From Ministeria vibrans ATCC 50519 (Eukaryota; Protista; Filasterea): DNA of 64,000 nt. Position 1 is the first letter of the stretch. Each line of letters begins with the position of its first letter. Below the pieces are notes generated by a model. It ran no database searches and was not told where the DNA came from. It saw only the letters and a list, made by a program, of their open reading frames with translations. The stretch covers positions 35,813 through 99,812 of the forward strand of contig CALSCP010001679.1 of NCBI GenBank assembly GCA_943704425.1, written 5' to 3'. Both the position numbers and the translations under genes were made by a program. Shown piece by piece: positions 17,121 through 27,900 of the stretch.

Positions 17121-20100
17121 CTATGCCTTCTTGGAGAGACGTTCGAGTCGGGCTTTCTCGAGGAGCGCTCTTTTCTCCAGGGCCTTGGCCTGTTTGGCCT
17201 CCAAACGACGTTCTGCCTGGCGCGACTGCTCCTCCAATTCCTCGAGAATAGCATCGCGATAGGCATCAAAGCCTTCTTCAAACTCAACGACGTCATTGTC
17301 GCCCACCACCCACAGGACCGAGTCAGTCTCCTGAATCAGACGTGCGTCGTGTGTCACTGTGATCACGCCCCCTTCAAACGAATTGATACCCTCAATCAGC
17401 GCATTGATCGATTCCATATCTATGATATTTTTCGATAGAGAAAGAGAGAGAGAGAATGAGACAACCTTTTTGGAATGCAAACAAGAAACAGGAATCACTG
17501 CATACCTAAATGATTTGTGGGCTCATCAAAAATGAGAATGTGAGGCTTAAGAAAACTCAAATGGGTAAAAACGACGCGGGACTTTTGGCCGCCACTGAGG
17601 TCACGGATAGGAATGGTGTGAGCGGGGCCGTCAAGACCAAATTTGCCCAGGCGCTGACGGGCGTCCTGGTACGTGCAGCCGTTTTGCTCGTGTTCGCGCT
17701 CAAGGTACTATTCGGGGCAATTGGATGAGAGAGTGAACAGAGAGTGTGTGTGACAGAGTAGTAGAGTCCAGAGAGAAAGAGAAAGGAAAAAAGAAACAAA
17801 GTGACAAAGACAAAAAGAGAAAGATTCACAATATATATAATAAATATAAATTTACAATAATTATACAATATTTTGAGAGTGGACACTGGCGAAAGAGTTA
17901 CCTGAACTGGGGACACGTCCATGTCAAGCTGGTCTACAAAGTGCTGGTTGTAGCGGCCCAGACGCAGTTTGCGGTTCATACGCACTTCGCCCTTGGTGGG
18001 TTCCAGAGTGCGGCACACCAGATCAAGAAGAGTCGATTTGCCCACACCTGGAAAATGACAAAAAAAAAAGGTATTATTTTAGGTTATGAGGGGGTTTTGT
18101 GTCTTGTTTTATCGTGTGTGGTTTGTAGGGTATATGCTCCTACCGTTAGGACCGACAATGGTAATGCGCGAGTCAAGATCAAGACCAAAGTTGACCTGAT
18201 TGAACAGCATGGGACGACCCTCATAATGAAAGTCAACATCAAGAACCTAAAAAAGCACACATGAACACAAGTTAGAGGACGCTATTGTGAGTGAGTGTAC
18301 GTGTATGTATATTACCTCAATGATTGGTGGAGGAAGCGGAGGCGGAGACTCAAAGAAGAACTTAACAACGTACTCCTTGCGACGCTGCAGCAGCTCTGTC
18401 TTGGTGTCTGAGCTTTCCTGCACCGACTCACCCTTGCCCTTCTTGCCCTTTTCCTTCTTGGCCCCACCAGCACGCGCCTAGAGAGAGGGAGAAAGGAGAG
18501 AAAAATGAGAGAGAAAGGAGAGAGAAAAAAAAAGTGATAGAGTGAGAGGAGAGAAGGAGAAAAAAAACAAGCAAAAAGATGATAGAGAAAGCAGAGGGGT
18601 GTCAAAGAAGAGTGTGCACAAGAATATGGGCCGATTGTGTGAGAGTGAAAGCGACTGAGCAAAATTAACATGTAAGAAAATTGACGTACCTCCCGTTGCT
18701 TGAGTAACTTTGCGTCCGCCTGTGACTTGCTCGCTCCTCCCTGCTTCAGTGCTCGCCGGGCCTTCTCTTGCTTCTCAAAGGATTTGTCAAACTCGCGCAC
18801 TTTCTATCACAGTCCGAAGAAGAGTGAGTCAGTGACTGCAATGACCATGATTGAAAAGAAAAGAAAAAGAAACCTGTTTGTGCATCTTCATGAAATCGTC
18901 AAAGTTGCCCTTGTACGCAACCACCTTCTTGCTTTCAAGGTGAAGCACGTCGGTGCAGACGCTGTTGAGGAAGTCCTGGTCGTGCGAGACGACAAGAAGA
19001 ATCTTCTTCCACTTCTGCAGGTAGTTGTCCAGCCAGATGACGGCGTTGAGGTCAAGATGATTCGTCGGCTACGAGAGAGTGGTCGAGTGAGTAAGACTGA
19101 GTGACGAGTGTCGCTAAAATTATAAATTATTATTATTATTATGGTTATTATTATGGTTATTATTGTTATTATTGTTATTATTGTTATTATTATTATTATT
19201 CTCATTATACCTCATCGAGAAGCAAAAGAGACGGCTCAATAAAAAGAGCACGGGCCAATGAGACACGCATGCGCCAGCCACCTGAGAATGACGACGTCAC
19301 ACGCTCCTGAGCTGCCTCATCGAACCCAAGACCAAACAGAATGCGCCTGTACGAAAACAAAGAATAAGTGTTCAAACTTCTGACTTCCTGTCACACACAT
19401 ACACACTAATTCTCTCTGTCTCTGCATGCGATTGGGTTGAATGTGTACCTGGCACGGGGCTCAGCACTCTCTGCGCCAATAAGAGCCAGTTCCTCGTAGA
19501 TGGCCTGCAGACGGTCGTCCATGTCGCCCGTGATGCGCTCGGGACTCTTCTCCATCAGTTGTGTGAGCTCTTTCTCCTCTGCAAGCAGTGACGCACGCTT
19601 GGCGTCTGCTGCGAGAACCGCCTCAATGACAGACATGTCAGTGGCGGCAAACTCTTGTTCGACAAGAAGACAGTCGAGATTGGATGGGATGGCAAGTGAG
19701 CGATTTGCAAGTTGCTTGAGCAGAGTCGTCTTTCCCTTGCCGTTGGGCCCCACCAGACCGTAGCGGCGCCCTTGCACAATGGTCAGCGACGCATTCACAA
19801 ACAGCTCACGACCTCCCGCCGAAATGCTAAAGTTCTCAATGCGCACAATGCTCGTGTCGAGATTCTCATTGGCGGCCGAGCTGAGCTGCTGCGTGACTGA
19901 AAACTGCGCGCCGTCCTGCGATGCCTTGAGCATGGCAGCCTCGCGGTCCTCACGCTCACGGTCCTCCTTGAGTTTGCGTCGCTGCTTGTTCGTGAGGCGT
20001 GGTGCACTCGAAGTCGTGCTGGTCGCAGTTGTTGTGTTAGAGCTAGGACCAGCAACGTCGTCGTCGTCATCATCATCATTCTCATTCACGTCCGCCTGGC

Positions 20101-20825
20101 CTTCCTCCTTCACTTTAACAACCTCCTTTGCTTTGTCCTCCTTCACTTCGACTGTCTTTTCCTCCTCCTCCGCCACAGGCGTCTTTTCCTCCTCCTCTAC
20201 CACAGGAGCCTTTTCCTCCTTAACCTCCTCGTCAAGCACATCCGTGCCCAGCTTCTTCTGCTTTCTCTTCTCCTTCTTCGACAGTGTCTGTGCTGCCTTT
20301 TCCTCCTCCTCTCCCTCCTCCTCCTCTTGCGACTGCTCACCTGCCAAAGCCGATGCTGCCGCCGCCGCCGCAGCAGCAGCAGCAGCAGCCTCCTTCTCTT
20401 CGGCCTCCTTCTGCGCAGCCTCCTCCTCGTCGCTAAGGTCATCAATGTCGAATGCCTTCTTCTTGCGCTTCTCCTTCTTCGACGCCTTGCCGCCACCGCT
20501 GGCCGACGCGGCGTTCGCCTTGGCAGCCTCTTCGGCCTCCAGCTCCTTCTTCATGGCCTCAATCGGGTCGAGCACGTCGTCGTCGTCGTCGTCGTCGTCG
20601 TCAGCGCCCGCACTGCGCTTGCCCTTCTTTTTCTTGCCGCCCTTTTTCGATGATCGACCCGACGCCGTCGACGACGCCACAGTCGACGTGCTTCGCGCGT
20701 CATCCCCGTCGTCGCCATCCTCCGCCCCCTCCTCCTCGCCATCGTCGTCGCTGTCGCCTCCGCGCTTGTTCTTGCGCCGGTCCTTCTTCGACACGCGGCC
20801 ACCCGACGATTTCGCAACGCCCTGC

Positions 20826-20857
<32 letters not shown>

Positions 20858-21076
20858 GCGCTTGCCCTTGGACGTCTCCGCCGCGCCCATCTCGTTGTCG
20901 TCGTCGTCGCTGCTGTCGTCTCCGCCCCGACGCCCCTTGCGCTTCCCTTTGCCCGTCCCCTTACGCGTCCCCACACTGTCTCCCTCGCCCCCACCCGCCG
21001 CTCCCTTCTTCTTGCGCACCGCCGCAGCCGGCGCCACGTTGTCGTCGTCGTTTCGTTGGGCTTTACCACGAGCCAT
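17121..21076 (-). CDS. ABCF1: ABC-F family protein 1 (ABC50), multi-exon
   Basis: Long K/E/D-rich N-terminus, [46 protein letters not shown], second Walker [16 protein letters not shown]. Confidence 0.93.
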
Positions 21077-21242: not shown

Positions 21243-21785
21243 ATGGAATTCCTTGTTCAATTTTGTGCCAACTGAGACGGTGGCCAGCAGGCAAGCTACT
21301 GTGTGTGTGGTGGTGGTGGGGAAGAGTGTCTTATTCAAGATCGTCGCTATAATAATATAATTATTATATGGTGCCATGTCGTATTCTGATTGATTTGCGC
21401 CACTCTGAGCCTCTCTCTCGCACGCCCACGCCATTATGTGGCCCCACTGCAAGCCCTTGGTCGCGTGCGCTGTGGCCGTTTGCTAATGAATATGCGCAGG
21501 AAGCGGACGCCGCAACGGATGCCATCCTGCAGGCCAAGCCGGACGCTGTGGTGAAGACGAAGCGAGTCAACGAATACCCGATCATGGTTAAGATCACAAC
21601 GGGCCGAAAGACCGTGTGGGAGGGGTACCCATATGCAAATCACATTTTTGACTTCAAAAACATTCTTATTTTTTTATTCACTCTTCTCTTCTCTTTCTTC
21701 CTTCTTCAGATCTCAAAAAGATCTGTTCCGAAAGAATGGTCACAGAGCCAAACCTGTGATCACGGCGGCTGTCAAGGCCCTGTAG
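21243..21785 (+). CDS. Small Rdx/SelW-like selenoprotein (CxxU), ~82 aa; exons 21243-21290, 21500-21624, 21710-21785
   Basis: MEFLVQFCAN-U(TGA 21273-21275)-DGGQQEADAATDAILQAKPDAVVKTKRVNEYPIMVKITTGRKTVWEGSQKDLFRKNGHRAKPVITAAVKAL. The beta-strand-CxxU start is typical of the Rdx family. CTAAT branch site precedes the acceptor at 21499, and a SECIS lies downstream. Confidence 0.82.
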
Positions 21786-21835
21786 ATCCCTTTCTCTCTG
21801 GATCGCCCGGTGTTATTCTCCCTATCTCTTTATGT

Positions 21836-21900
21836 GTATCTGTGTGACTCTGCCCTTGAAAGAAACCTCTTCGTGAGGCCTTTGCGGCGGATGATGATGC
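21836..21900 (+). promoter_or_regulatory. Eukaryotic SECIS element (type II, GUGA core variant)
   Basis: Helix I GTATC/GATGC; core GTGAC (21844-48) / TGAT (21892-95); helix II TCTGCC/GGCGGA plus AAAG/CTTT; unpaired AAA (21863-65); apical mini-stem CCTC/GAGG. Lies ~50 nt after the stop of a UGA-containing ORF. Confidence 0.82.
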
Positions 21901-21962
21901 TATTGTAATTGCTGATAAACAAAAGAGGTGATAATATCATTGTGGTAAAAATAAATATACAG

Positions 21963-22655
21963 TTAAAGGAGACGACGACGGTCGCTGTCATCGTCGTCCA
22001 AGTCGATTTCATCCAACTCCAGATCGCCCAGCGCCATTGTGATATCCACACTCTCATTCTCAAGCGACTCCTCATGACGCACCGCACGACTGCGACTCGA
22101 TGATGATGCGACAGCAGCAGCAGCAGCAGCTTTGCTTCGTGGATGGTGTTCTCCCTTGAATACGTCCCGCCCACCATCAATGTCGTCGCCCAGCGCATTC
22201 AGGCGTTCCCACTTGCGCCTTCCCACGCCCAAGCGCGCCTTCTCGCGTCGCAGTGAGTTGCGGTGACGACGCAGCGGCACATCCACCACCCCATCAAGCA
22301 TCACTTCACCCACACTAGTGCCATCCGCAGTCATTCCCCTCTTGCACAGCCAACACGCGTCCGTCACATCCTCAAGAGACCCTTCAGCTGCAGCAGGTTC
22401 ATCCCCACTCTTGCGCGTCGCACTAGAGCGCACCTCTTCCTCCTTCTCAACGGCCTTCAGCATCACTGTCGTGCGATAGGGCACTGCACCCGTCAGCAGC
22501 GGAGCCTCCATTTTGTTCACCAAACACACAATCCTCCACGACACTCCGCGACTAAAAAAAAATCCTCAACAAGAATAAAATTAATAAGTCTGCAAGTGCG
22601 TGTGCTTGGTGTGTATGTATGTATGTATGTATGTATGTATGTATGTATGTATGTA

Positions 22656-22714
<59 letters not shown>

Positions 22715-24760
22715 TGGTGGTGGTGGTGGTGGTGACACTGGACTGCATCATTTCTGACCGTGGTTGTGTTTCAGGCAGTGTCTCAAGCATCACACGCACT
22801 TTCTCATGCACAATTCCCTGAAGCTCGACCAGTTTTCGTTCAGATCGTCTAAACCAAACCAATCAGTCTCAGTACAACACTATGATTAAGACGCAAAAAT
22901 GAATGTACGTTCTGTAGGCCGCGAGAATAGGCAGACAAAGACAGCAGGTAAGGCACGAGAAGCCAAGGAGACACGACTCAATCTTCCACCGTCTTGATTG
23001 CGCTTTTGACATTAGTGCAAACGGTTCGTTCATTCGTCGTACCTACAAAAACAACAACAGCGCCACACACTCAAACTTTAGGGTTTTTGTTCTTCTCTCG
23101 TTGACTGCTGCCTGAATCTCTCTCTCTATCCCTTTTTTTCTTTCTCTCAACGTTGTTCTCTCCGTCTCTTCTTTTTCTTCTTGAAACTCTTTATCACTCC
23201 TGCTCTCTTCTGCTACGTCTTTTTTTTCTTGTTTTTAGCGTACCGCAGAGCAAAAGTCGGCGGGTGAAATGCGGTTGTCAAGGTCAACATGAAAGTTGTC
23301 GTAGAAGAGCTCTTCAAGGCAGAGATTGAGAGTGCGGATGGCACGGGTGGGCTGGGAGGATAACGGAGTGGTGCGAACAAGACGTAGGCAGACGGAGGAA
23401 CAGGCGGAGCAGAGACGTGCGGGCGGGGAGGGAGTGGGTGGAGGAGAGAGGGGCGGAGGTGGTTGGCACGGAAGCATGTGCCAGCGCAAGGAGGCGCTGG
23501 TGGCGGGAGTGGTAGTGGGCTCAAGGGCAAGCGAGAGGATCCCATAGTCACCGGCAAGCACAAGAACATTGTCTTGCGCAATGCAGTACCACAAACGCCC
23601 AAGATTGCCAAAGTTGTAGTTGCCCAACACAAGTGCATGGTCGCGTTCGCTCACTTGTGTGTCTGGGTGACGGCCTGTGCGATTGAGTTTGTGCAAACTG
23701 AGAATGCGCAGTGCTCCTGTGCGACTGCAACACACGACAAGCGCTTCACTGTCGGGCAGATACAGTCCGTGGGAGATCTGAAGAATAAACAGAACGGTTT
23801 GTATCCATTCGCACTGCAATCTAATCTTGTTTTTTTCTTACTTCGCCAATGTCCGATTGAAGGAAACACACGCGCTTGAACTGTTGCAGCCCGTCCCACA
23901 CGCGAACGTTGCCATTGTCATCGCCAGTAATAAGCCACAAATGACTGCCGGTGTCGACAAACTCACACCACGAGCACATGTTGGCGTGTCCGAGACGCAG
24001 CGGTGGGATGTTGGTGCGATCGTCAATGTCGAAGACGGTACAATCACGCGAGAGTGACGCAACGCAGATGTATCGACCATTGTCGCGAGGGCTCACCGTC
24101 ACATACATGCAGTAGTGCTGACACATAAAGTAGCGCTCCTTTTTCCACTGCAACGCCAAATGGTGTGTGTGGGTAAGCAGATAGTGCGTCTAATGAACTG
24201 TCTTTACCTCTCCGTCCACACTCCCAGACGTCAATCGCCACATGACGACTGTCTGATCATCGCTTGTGGTAAATACAATGTCGGGGCGCGAAGGATGCAT
24301 CCGAATGCAGCGGATGTAGTCGAGATGGGCTGAGACAACAATTCATTAGTTGGCAGTAAATCACAAGTTTGAGTACCTTTGAATGAGTGAACCACAGCAA
24401 GATCCTCGCTGTCCAACACGTACACCGTATACTTGTCGTTTCCAACGAGAATCCGATCGGCTGAAGCGATGCAGACTGCAGAAGGAAAGAAGTCGGTAAG
24501 TTACCAAACGTGCACAAAAAACAAACGAAGAAATTTTCCAAACAGCTCAAGTTCACAATTTCACCTGTTCGAATGGGCACACTGTCAACTTTGGTTCGCA
24601 TGGCAATCACCCGGCCAACAAGGTCGTACACAGCGACGCTTCCATCATACAGAGTGACCAGAATTTTCTCGCCGCACGGAAAGAAGGCAAGACTCTTGAC
24701 ACGCGTCGAGTATTCAACCCAGTGGCGCCGCAGCGTCCACGGCACAAGATTGTCGTCCAT
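21963..24760 (-). CDS. Divergent beta'-COP-like WD40 protein with C-terminal Erf4/GOLGA7-like Cys-rich domain, multi-exon
   Basis: STRVKSLAFFP..ILVTLYDGSV, VPIRT, AHLDYIRCIRMHPSRP and LITGDDNGNVRVWD parallel the COPB2 N-terminal propeller. Later FHVDLDNRISPADFCSAVRRMNE...ESCLLGFSCLTCCLCLP...RGVSW resembles Erf4. Confidence 0.65.
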
Positions 24761-24978: not shown

Positions 24979-27900
24979 TCAATGGTTGATCGTCGAATCA
25001 CCAGTCTCAGTGCGCTCGAGCGCCCACTCAGTGTGCGCCCCGCGCGTTTGACGCTTGACAATCCTGAACTTGGTCAGGTCAAAGCGAGTGACCATGCCAC
25101 GCACCTGATTGAAACGATTCACCACGACCAAGTGACGTAGACCCATGCCACGGAAGAGACGGAAGGCGCGCGACAGGGCCGATCGCTCGCGAAGTGTGTA
25201 CGGCGTCGCGTTGAGGTAGGGCCGTAGGTCAATGACAAAATCAGAGTCGCTTTCGTTAACGTGCACCGATTCAATCTTGGGGTAGCGCGGGTAGTCTGCC
25301 TGGAAATCCTCTAGGGTGAGTCGCTTCGCCTGCACCGTCACCGAGTTGCCTGTGTTTATTGCAACGCCGTGCGCGCGATGGTTCAGCAGTGTGATGAGCT
25401 GTGAGCGCATAATGATGCCGCAAAAGGTGCCGTACGAGTGATCCTGATCAACCCCTTCAAAATCGTGCGAGACGACGGGGAAGGCATGGTGGGAGGAGCG
25501 CAGCAGCGTGCGGTAAACACTTCCCACAGTCTCAAGCTGCTGTAGACACTCGACATGCTTGGCCATGACGTCGCCCACACGAAAGTTTTGCATGTGGAAG
25601 GGTGCCTCCCAGGGCAGTAGTGGAATGCGCGCCAGGTGAATGTGGATGTCGTAGATGCCCTCGTTGAAAAGATCACCAATTACTTTGCTCACAACAATGG
25701 TTAGCATAAGAGGCAAACCGTACGCCACATTTCCTGTCGCCTCCATAATGATGACTGTCAGCGAAATGGTCATGCGCACTATACCCGCCAGCACAGCAGC
25801 AGCACCAATCAGCGCATACTTGCCCGGATCCACCCATGTGTAGTCGGGCAGGAAATAGAACAAAACTTCCCCAAAAAGCCGTCCAAAGGCAGCACCCGTG
25901 AGCAGCGACGGCACAAACAGACCCGAAGGCACACCGATGCCATACGTGACAACCGACAGGCAGAAGTAAATGACAAAAAAAATGGCCAACAAATCCATAT
26001 GATAGTCACCTAAAAATGAATGAGAAACGAAGTAAGTTTTGTTTGCGTGCATGCGTATTTGAAAGAGAGAAATGAAAAGTGACAGTGTGTGCATGTGAGT
26101 TCTCTTACCAGGTTGAGCGTGAAAAAGACTCTTGATGGACTCTTCAGGAGTGTTGAAGAGCAAGGATGCCATTTGGTTGTATTGTTGCTGAGGACAAAAC
26201 AGCAAAAACTGATGGCCCGACGGAGCGTGTCCTATCAAGAAGAGAAAATAAACATAATAATTATTATAATATAATATTATATAAATAATATAATAATTAT
26301 TATTATATTATTATAATTATAATATAATTATATTGATATTGATTGATGTATTATTGTGTGAACTGAGAGACAGTATATGCTGCGCTATAGAACAACTCTG
26401 TGCATGTGTGGTACCTTGAGGGAGACAATCGTTAACGCCGTAGACAAGTGCAAAAGAGATGGTTGCAGTAAAAATAGAAATAGCCAGCACTTCCATTAGT
26501 CGGTAACTCGGTCTATTAAAACAATGTCAACGTGAGAACTCGTGTGACATTGAACAGACAATGCAGTACACAACACACAGAATCACGTTTGTCAACGATT
26601 CTCTCTCTCTCTGGGCCTGCCTCCGCCCCTCTCAATCTCTCTCATTGAGTACTTTGAGAAATGATGTCTGCGTAAAATGGTGAGACGGGTGTTGATCATG
26701 TTGAAAAGTGCACCAATGAGTCCTCCAATGACTCCCATGATCATGAAAATCGGCAGTTCCTCCAAATTGTACGTCGCAAGTGCAAACGATCCGAAATTGA
26801 GCAAACCGGGCGAGGAGAGAGAGCCAAAGCCCGTCAGATAGGTTGAACGCAGGACATTCAGAGTAAACGTGGCAGTCATGCTCGCAAAAAAAATGCGCCA
26901 AGTCAGTGCCTGATTCCAGAAGGAAGCGCCTGAAACAAACCCAACATTCACACACACACAACATAAAAGCAGAGGTGAAAACCATGTCATTTTGAAAATA
27001 GCGGTAGTCTACCTTCTTCAAGGGCAAAAAGAACCCCGCCAATGGGTGCGCCAAAGGCAGCAGATACACCCGCAGCCGCGCCGGCCGAGACAAAGTCGCG
27101 TTTCTCTTGGTCGTTGCGGAAGGCACGAAACCACTTAAGGTCCAGTTTGAACGACGTTGCTTTGCCCTGCGACACTCCTGCAGCCACAACAGCCCCCGAG
27201 TGGATCATTGGACCCTAAGCAAAAAACCCCACAAAAAATGAGTCTGTGTGCACATTCGAAACTATCGAACCTCTTTGCCGACTGCGAGACCACCACTGAC
27301 ACTGAAGAGCACACCGACTGCCTTGGCCAGGAGCGTCTTGATGCGCACCACATGAGGAATTTTAATGCCGTTGAGGTAGCATTTGATCTCGGGAATGCCC
27401 GAACCGGCCGCGAGAGGCTACACACGCAGAGAAAAGAAAAAAAAAAGAAGAAGAAAAAAGAAGAAGAAGAAGAGGGAACAATCAAGAGTGGTTTCGCTTT
27501 GGCTGTTTCAACTCACCTCTACCAACGTGCCAAGAATGCCACCGATTGAGGTGTAGCCGACGTTGATAGCCACCCAAATAAGAAGGGTCTCCCACAGACA
27601 GTCGCCAGCCGTGCACTTGTCCATCGACTTGCCGAGCGCGAGAAACTTGAGGTCAGACAGGTAGCGAATGCACAAATCAATGGCAGTCGCAATGGCGCCT
27701 GTGATGATCCCAACGAGCAGACAGATGAGCCAGCGGGCACCCTCTAGTTTCAGATGGTCCTGCGCACGGAGGGGGAGGAGGGAGGAGCGGTGGTTCGTGG
27801 CGTGTGTAGCGCAGAGGAAATGAGAAAGAGATTTCTGCGAAAAACTTCTCTTTGGTTCGGTTACCTTTTCACTTCGCGTTGCTGCTTCGTCGAGGAATAC

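Follow-up and report, generated by a model that had tools for sequence, protein, structure and literature searches.

A candidate CxxU selenoprotein gene with a SelW-like layout in Ministeria vibrans

Organisation of the locus

The window analysed in the present study, i.e. the whole stretch of 64,000 nucleotides taken from the 29.7-Mb eukaryotic assembly of Ministeria vibrans, contains a candidate gene of three exons on the plus strand, flanked by two genes of the minus strand—an ABCF1-like gene with its ATG at 21076 and a second gene ending at 21963. The ATG of the former is separated from that of the candidate by an AT-rich spacer of 167 nt, representing a shared promoter region, and on the other side the 3′ ends are convergent. 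The first exon of the ABCF1-like gene covers the positions 19406–21076 (minus strand) and has a long, charged front of low complexity; the best named relatives of the protein are animal ABCF1, exhibiting 53–57% identity, a hint that the species stands nearer to animals than to algae. Runs of GT and TATG microsatellites are present at 22600–22740, within the downstream gene's intron or spacer.

Exon 1 of the candidate (21243–21290, plus strand, 48 nt) reads MEFLVQFCAN*DGGQQ, as it was given in the initial annotation. Its ATG (21243–21245), with an A in position −3 and a G in position +4, is followed by the hydrophobic EFLVQF, by Cys8 (TGT, 21264–21266), by a TGA as codon 11 (21273–21275) and by DGGQQ. 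A CxxU motif—MEFLVQF-C-A-N-TGA, codons 8–11, 21264–21275—is found directly past the putative first strand.

Exon 2 (21500–21624, plus strand, 125 nt) consists of 41 full codons and two further nucleotides, coding for EADAATDAILQAKPDAVVKTKRVNEYPIMVKITTGRKTVWE plus GG, whereas the coding part of exon 3 (21710–21785, plus strand, 76 nt) begins with the A that completes the codon of Gly58, continues with SQKDLFRKNGHRAKPVITAAVKAL and ends with the TAG at 21783–21785. The sum of the three pieces, 48 + 125 + 76 = 249 nt, corresponds to 82 codons and the stop, and the in-frame splicing claimed originally is thus borne out as far as the frames are concerned. It has to be corrected, however, with regard to intron 1 (21291–21499, plus strand, 209 nt), which is of the GC-AG kind and for which other frame-compatible donors exist. 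The donor of this intron, CAG/GCAAGC, agrees well with what the GC-AG class requires, its acceptor is GCGCAG/G, and a branch-like site CTAAT is located at 21483–21487. An alternative GT donor, also compatible with the frame, lies 12 nt downstream at 21303; it would add four residues (ASYC), resulting in a product of 86 residues, so that the CxxU exon reaches the frame of exon 2 with either the GC or the GT donor. Judged from the sequence, intron 1 is nevertheless the weak point of the predicted gene model, since its donor has to be either GC, which is rare, or GTGTGT, which is weak. GT runs occur inside this intron (21300–21320), as they do in another locus of the genome (L008) and in the microsatellites of the downstream gene. 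Concerning intron 2 (21625–21709, plus strand, 85 nt), its donor is GG/GTACCC, and its acceptor CTTCAG/A is preceded by a long pyrimidine tract; a donor of the GTAC type is also present in the glutathione peroxidase (GPx) gene of the same genome.

A possible polyadenylation signal, the AATAAA at 21950–21955 (plus strand) read directly from the sequence, is positioned 50 nt past the hairpin described below, immediately before the stop at which the convergent gene of the minus strand ends. No transcript or splice support was found for the candidate in public read-derived data, the sole contig found for the species, from the Logan collection (run SRR23272272), being genomic DNA in which the neighbouring gene is unspliced, 99.75% identical to and collinear with the positions 19175–20384 of the window.

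Coding signal of the exons

The codon log-odds of exon 2 amount to 12.6 bits, this frame being the best of the six and exceeding the 95th percentile reached by chunks drawn at random from the genome. For exon 1, the proposed frame is again the best of the six, with 3.9 bits, a value without significance, and exon 3 is neutral (−0.3 bits). It should be noted that, in the frame of exon 2, no stop occurs upstream as far as 21356, and that this open segment contains an ATG at 21368. The in-frame segment 21368–21499, corresponding to 44 residues, scores near 0, however, and has a non-coding-like make-up; coding therefore begins near 21500 and not at the ATG 21368. Without reading through the TGA as selenocysteine, the longest ATG-led product in the frame would have 38 aa or would start with the 44 non-coding-like residues.

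A SECIS-like hairpin downstream of the stop codon

The initial annotation had placed a type II SECIS about 50 nt past the TAG. A SECIS-like hairpin of 65 nt with the type II layout is indeed located there, at 21836–21900 (plus strand), 50 nt past the stop codon; its core is, however, GUGA and not AUGA, and the Rfam model remains silent. Helix I is formed by 21836–21840 pairing with 21896–21900 (GUAUC/GAUGC) and is followed by a short internal loop on the 5′ side. The GUGA of the 5′ core (21844–21847) is opposed by the UGAU of the 3′ side (21892–21895), G-UGA-C facing U-GA-U. Helix II, UCUGCC/GGCGGA with a weaker extension, has only six solid pairs beside the core. The AAAG at 21859–21862, 11 nt past the core, is succeeded by AAA, and the upper stem consists of four pairs (21866–21869 with 21875–21878, CCUC/GAGG) closed by the five-base loop UUCGU. 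All the elements of a SECIS are found in the hairpin, i.e. the UGA/GA quartet, helix II, the unpaired AA 11–15 nt from the core, and helix I. Its folding energy is −19.4 kcal/mol (z −2.4), a value equalled by 5 of 200 shuffled sequences. Part for part, the hairpin agrees with the SECIS of the GPx gene (L011:2006-2081), in which AUGA is followed, after 12 nt, by AAAG and later by UGAU. Cores with GUGA are reported to prevail in some green algae and in sponges (PMC3473315).

Other SECIS elements of the genome served to draw up a descriptor, demanding a core R(U/G)GA, AA(A/G)G 11–15 nt further on, (U/C)GAU 40–70 nt from the core, and duplex energies of helices I and II at least equal to the strength of the weakest seed; the SECIS of the second GPx gene (L010) was left out of the seeds. 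When 264 kb of the genome were searched on both strands, 528 kb in all, three matches were obtained, one of them being the candidate hairpin. About 0.001 matches are expected per 3′ UTR of 180 nt, 0.004 with a wider version and 0.08 with the loosest pattern, all to be read with the thresholds having been fixed after the candidate hairpin had been seen; the descriptor misses the SECIS of the PRXL2C-like gene. As regards the other end of the candidate gene, the expected number of ATG-led CxxTGA starts followed by an open frame is 0.022 in the 260 nt available. That such a start motif and a seed-like SECIS (0.001–0.004) should coincide at a single locus has a joint chance of at most about 1e-4.

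The Rfam model SECIS_1 gave no match at the candidate locus, at the clear SECIS of the GPx gene or anywhere in the genome. Since the same model misses that GPx element and the rest of the genome as well, its silence at the locus carries no weight, and selenoprotein screens depending on this model would see nothing here. Two covariance models, one derived solely from the GPx SECIS (R1) and one from the GPx and PRXL2C-like elements (R2), retrieved neither the candidate hairpin nor the SECIS of the deiodinase-like gene; having missed both, they are too sequence-bound to judge by. The top match of the two-seed model, at 26375–26446 of the minus strand (15.3 bits, E 0.028), lacks the UGA core (CGUUAACG) and was rejected as a SECIS.

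Selenocysteine decoding in the genome

The genome of M. vibrans decodes selenocysteine. Concerning the tRNA-Sec, for whose presence the initial annotation had wished the genome to be inspected, a candidate at G000:C2383:9718-9814 (L001:1501-1597) reaches 55.3 bits against Rfam RF01852, over the cut-off, with a TATA box, TATAAATA, lying some 35 nt upstream and a run of T downstream; this tRNA is missed by ARAGORN. A gene for SepSecS is present with five exon matches. The genome further contains two GPx genes with an in-frame TGA at the catalytic position, a PRXL2C-like gene with an in-frame TGA in a TGA-x-x-Cys exon, and a deiodinase-like gene. The GPx, PRXL2C-like and deiodinase-like genes pass the cut-offs of curated families, whereas the candidate gene matches no family.

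For the second GPx gene (L010:2326-2700, G000:C2371; NVATY-TGA-G), no SECIS was accepted by the descriptor. At about 2388–2435 of the same locus there is a stretch GUGA...AAAC...UGAU, with a weak helix II. A tRNA of 73 nt with the anticodon UCA, located between tRNA-Asp and tRNA-Gly at L003:1499-1571 (G000:C1523), was called tRNA-SeC by ARAGORN; judged by its sequence, it looks like an organellar, UGA-reading tRNA (perhaps tRNA-Trp) and not like a nuclear tRNA-Sec.

Searches for relatives and the predicted fold

In the scans against Pfam and NCBIfam, carried out separately with the 41 aa of exon 2 and the 24 aa of exon 3, neither PF10262 nor TIGR02174 was matched at E values up to 10. A match to MmoB/DmpM (E 0.02), below the cut-off, was taken as noise. 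The same two families, PF10262 and TIGR02174, searched for in six frames of the whole genome, gave no match at the candidate locus or elsewhere. Genes for SelW, SelT and SelH are widespread among selenocysteine-using eukaryotes; in this genome, they are either missing, split into short exons, or diverged.

Exon 2 found no match among the PDB sequences and in the ESM Atlas, and it was equally blank in the paralogue search within its own genome, in a word search with two length ranges, and against 1.84 billion representatives. These blanks mean that there are no near kin in the collections searched, and nothing more, since a query of 41 aa reaches close relatives only. Exact-product look-ups for the ORFs of the locus found nothing on record. 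With two degenerate DNA patterns, nothing relevant was found in metagenomes, and no aligned Cys or Sec; the two matches obtained, both with one of these patterns, were discarded as chance, lying in bacterial DNA rich in GC and being preceded by a stop at a distance of two codons. The initial annotation had supposed that homologues are annotated as truncated proteins; this was not confirmed, as exon 2 found no homologue of any length, within the reach of short queries that detect close relatives only.

An AlphaFold2 model of exon 2 alone (mean pLDDT 75) predicts a helix at residues 4–12 and strands at 17–23, 26–34 and 37–40, in the numbering of the exon. By this fragment model and the arithmetic of the exons, the predicted strands of the candidate begin 22, 31 and 42 residues after Sec. 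The corresponding distances in the structure of MIEN1 (Rdx12), counted from the second Cys, are 21, 32 and 41 residues (PMC3527542). When the fragment model of exon 2 was used for fold searches, the outcome was unspecific, with only generic matches to a helix plus three strands. Residues 2–7 of the candidate may form the first strand, as suggested by their hydrophobic pattern only.

Interpretation

Based on the above observations, the candidate is probably a real three-exon gene, in which UGA codon 11 is recoded via the SECIS at 21836–21900 and which encodes a small cytosolic CxxU thiol-selenol oxidoreductase of SelW-like build. This reading, and with it the hidden selenoprotein gene of the initial annotation, is favoured on four grounds: the CxxU start, the frame-compatible splice to a coding-like exon, the well-placed SECIS-like hairpin matching those of the genome, and the presence of the selenocysteine machinery.

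It has to be weighed against the view that there is no gene at all, the segment consisting of spacer and of the UTRs of both neighbours on the minus strand. The pieces of ORF, the CxxTGA and the hairpin would then be coincidences, picked out by a reader in search of such features. Hundreds of genome windows have been read, and rare coincidences are therefore bound to appear somewhere; the loosest SECIS pattern, taken by itself, is expected 0.08 times per 180 nt, but the combination of the start motif with a seed-like SECIS brings the chance down to the joint value given above. Similarly, while the lack of coding signal in exons 1 and 3 speaks for mere spacer, exon 2 is coding-like solely in the proposed frame, and it is followed by an intron with a strong pyrimidine tract and a strong acceptor. 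Neither a homologue nor a transcript has been found, as would be expected from spacer DNA; on the other hand, an AATAAA is present past the hairpin, and removing the candidate would leave a gap of 700 nt within a gene-dense region. On balance, the absence of a gene seems unlikely.

A small gene without selenocysteine has been considered, too. The ATG at 21243 and the TGA would then delimit an upstream ORF of 10 codons, with the protein starting later—at the ATG 21368 without intron 1, or at a Met within exon 2—or the transcript would be non-coding. The ORF from 21368, made possible by the frame of exon 2 being open to 21356, is what ordinary gene finders would choose; it is at odds, however, with the near-zero, non-coding-like score of its first 44 residues, whereas a start at an internal Met leaves only 38 aa. 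Since, moreover, the SECIS-like hairpin and the CxxU right past the start codon would both be left unexplained, this possibility is regarded as quite improbable, still more so than the absence of a gene.

Returning to the selenoprotein gene, we infer its splicing, its expression, the insertion of Sec, and the fold and redox role of its product as follows. The hairpin at 21836–21900 would act as a SECIS of the 3′ UTR, recruiting SBP2, eEFSec and Sec-tRNA(Sec), and owing to this recruitment UGA codon 11 would be decoded as selenocysteine instead of a stop. The product would be composed of a hydrophobic strand and Cys8-Ala-Asn-Sec11, succeeded by one helix, three strands and a second helix at the C-terminus, as in SelW and MIEN1, whose fold is the minimal thioredoxin-like one typical of the Rdx group. 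In the reaction, Sec11 may attack the oxidised thiol or the disulfide of a partner and then pair with Cys8 as a selenenylsulfide, to be reduced by glutathione or thioredoxin.

Whether the candidate founds an unnamed, lineage-restricted family—a minimal CxxU selenoprotein of the thioredoxin fold, too diverged for the profiles of SelW, SelT and SelH and the sole such protein in the genome—is a more doubtful matter, and we hold this idea with low confidence, as possible rather than likely. The kind of gene is familiar; it is the family that might be the new part. If real, the gene would add one more selenoprotein to the count of a little-known microbial eukaryote, would be a further instance of small Sec genes being missed by ORF calling, by the Rfam SECIS model and by protein family scans, and would offer a test case for the limits of divergence of the SelW-type minimal redox fold. 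Because CxxU selenoproteins with a type II SECIS are of a familiar kind, the practical consequence beyond the annotation of the organism is small.

Comparison with known selenoproteins

In the Rdx family, Sec is followed by Gly or Arg plus an aromatic residue, and the third strand is GxFEV-like. The candidate is without these motifs, having U-DGGQQ and YPIMVKI instead; the comparison is a weak one. With this reservation, the difference from canonical SelW/T/H pointed out in the initial annotation holds, YPIMVKI standing in place of the GxFEV-type strand.

The candidate is like SELENOW in its size of about 85 aa without a signal peptide, in the hydrophobic first strand (predicted in the candidate) right past the Met, followed by the CxxU near residue 10, in the succession of CxxU, helix, three strands and C-terminal helix (these elements being predicted for the candidate), and in having the UGA in exon 1 and the SECIS in a short 3′ UTR. 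It is unlike SELENOW in that its exon pieces show no match to PF10262, TIGR02174 or PDB sequences; as leads only, it has DGG after the candidate Sec in place of Gly/Arg plus an aromatic residue, and YPIMVKI as the candidate third strand in place of the GxFEV type. In SelW (Dikiy et al. 2007, as cited in PMC3316567), strand 1 and the CxxU near residue 10 are succeeded by one helix, three strands and another helix at the C-terminus.

With MIEN1/Rdx12, the candidate would share, by its predicted elements, the order of strand 1, CxxC (CxxU in the candidate), helix 1, strands 2–4 and helix 2. MIEN1 differs by having Cys and not Sec, as well as by its N- and C-terminal extensions; no sequence similarity to it was detected, and the comparison is that of a model of exon 2 alone. 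Of the Rdx/SelW-like assignment made originally, the layout with its MIEN1-like spacing and the length of about 82 aa can be retained; the layout does not establish membership in the family. PF10262 and TIGR02174 match neither the short exon pieces, scanned apart, nor the six-frame translation of the locus, and the candidate locus is not filed as a member of the Rdx family.

Concerning the GPx, PRXL2C-like and deiodinase-like genes of the same genome, the candidate is like them in carrying an in-frame TGA at a catalytic site or adjacent to a redox Cys, in its short introns, and in the type II layout of its SECIS-like hairpin; in their SECIS elements, the AAAG or AAGG is found 12–14 nt past the core, while the 3′ side carries U/CGAU. 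It is unlike them in the core of this element, which is GUGA in the candidate and AUGA or AGGA in the others. As modelled here, the candidate thus resembles SelW and MIEN1 in size, in the position of the motif and in the spacing of the elements, and may be described as SelW-like by layout only.
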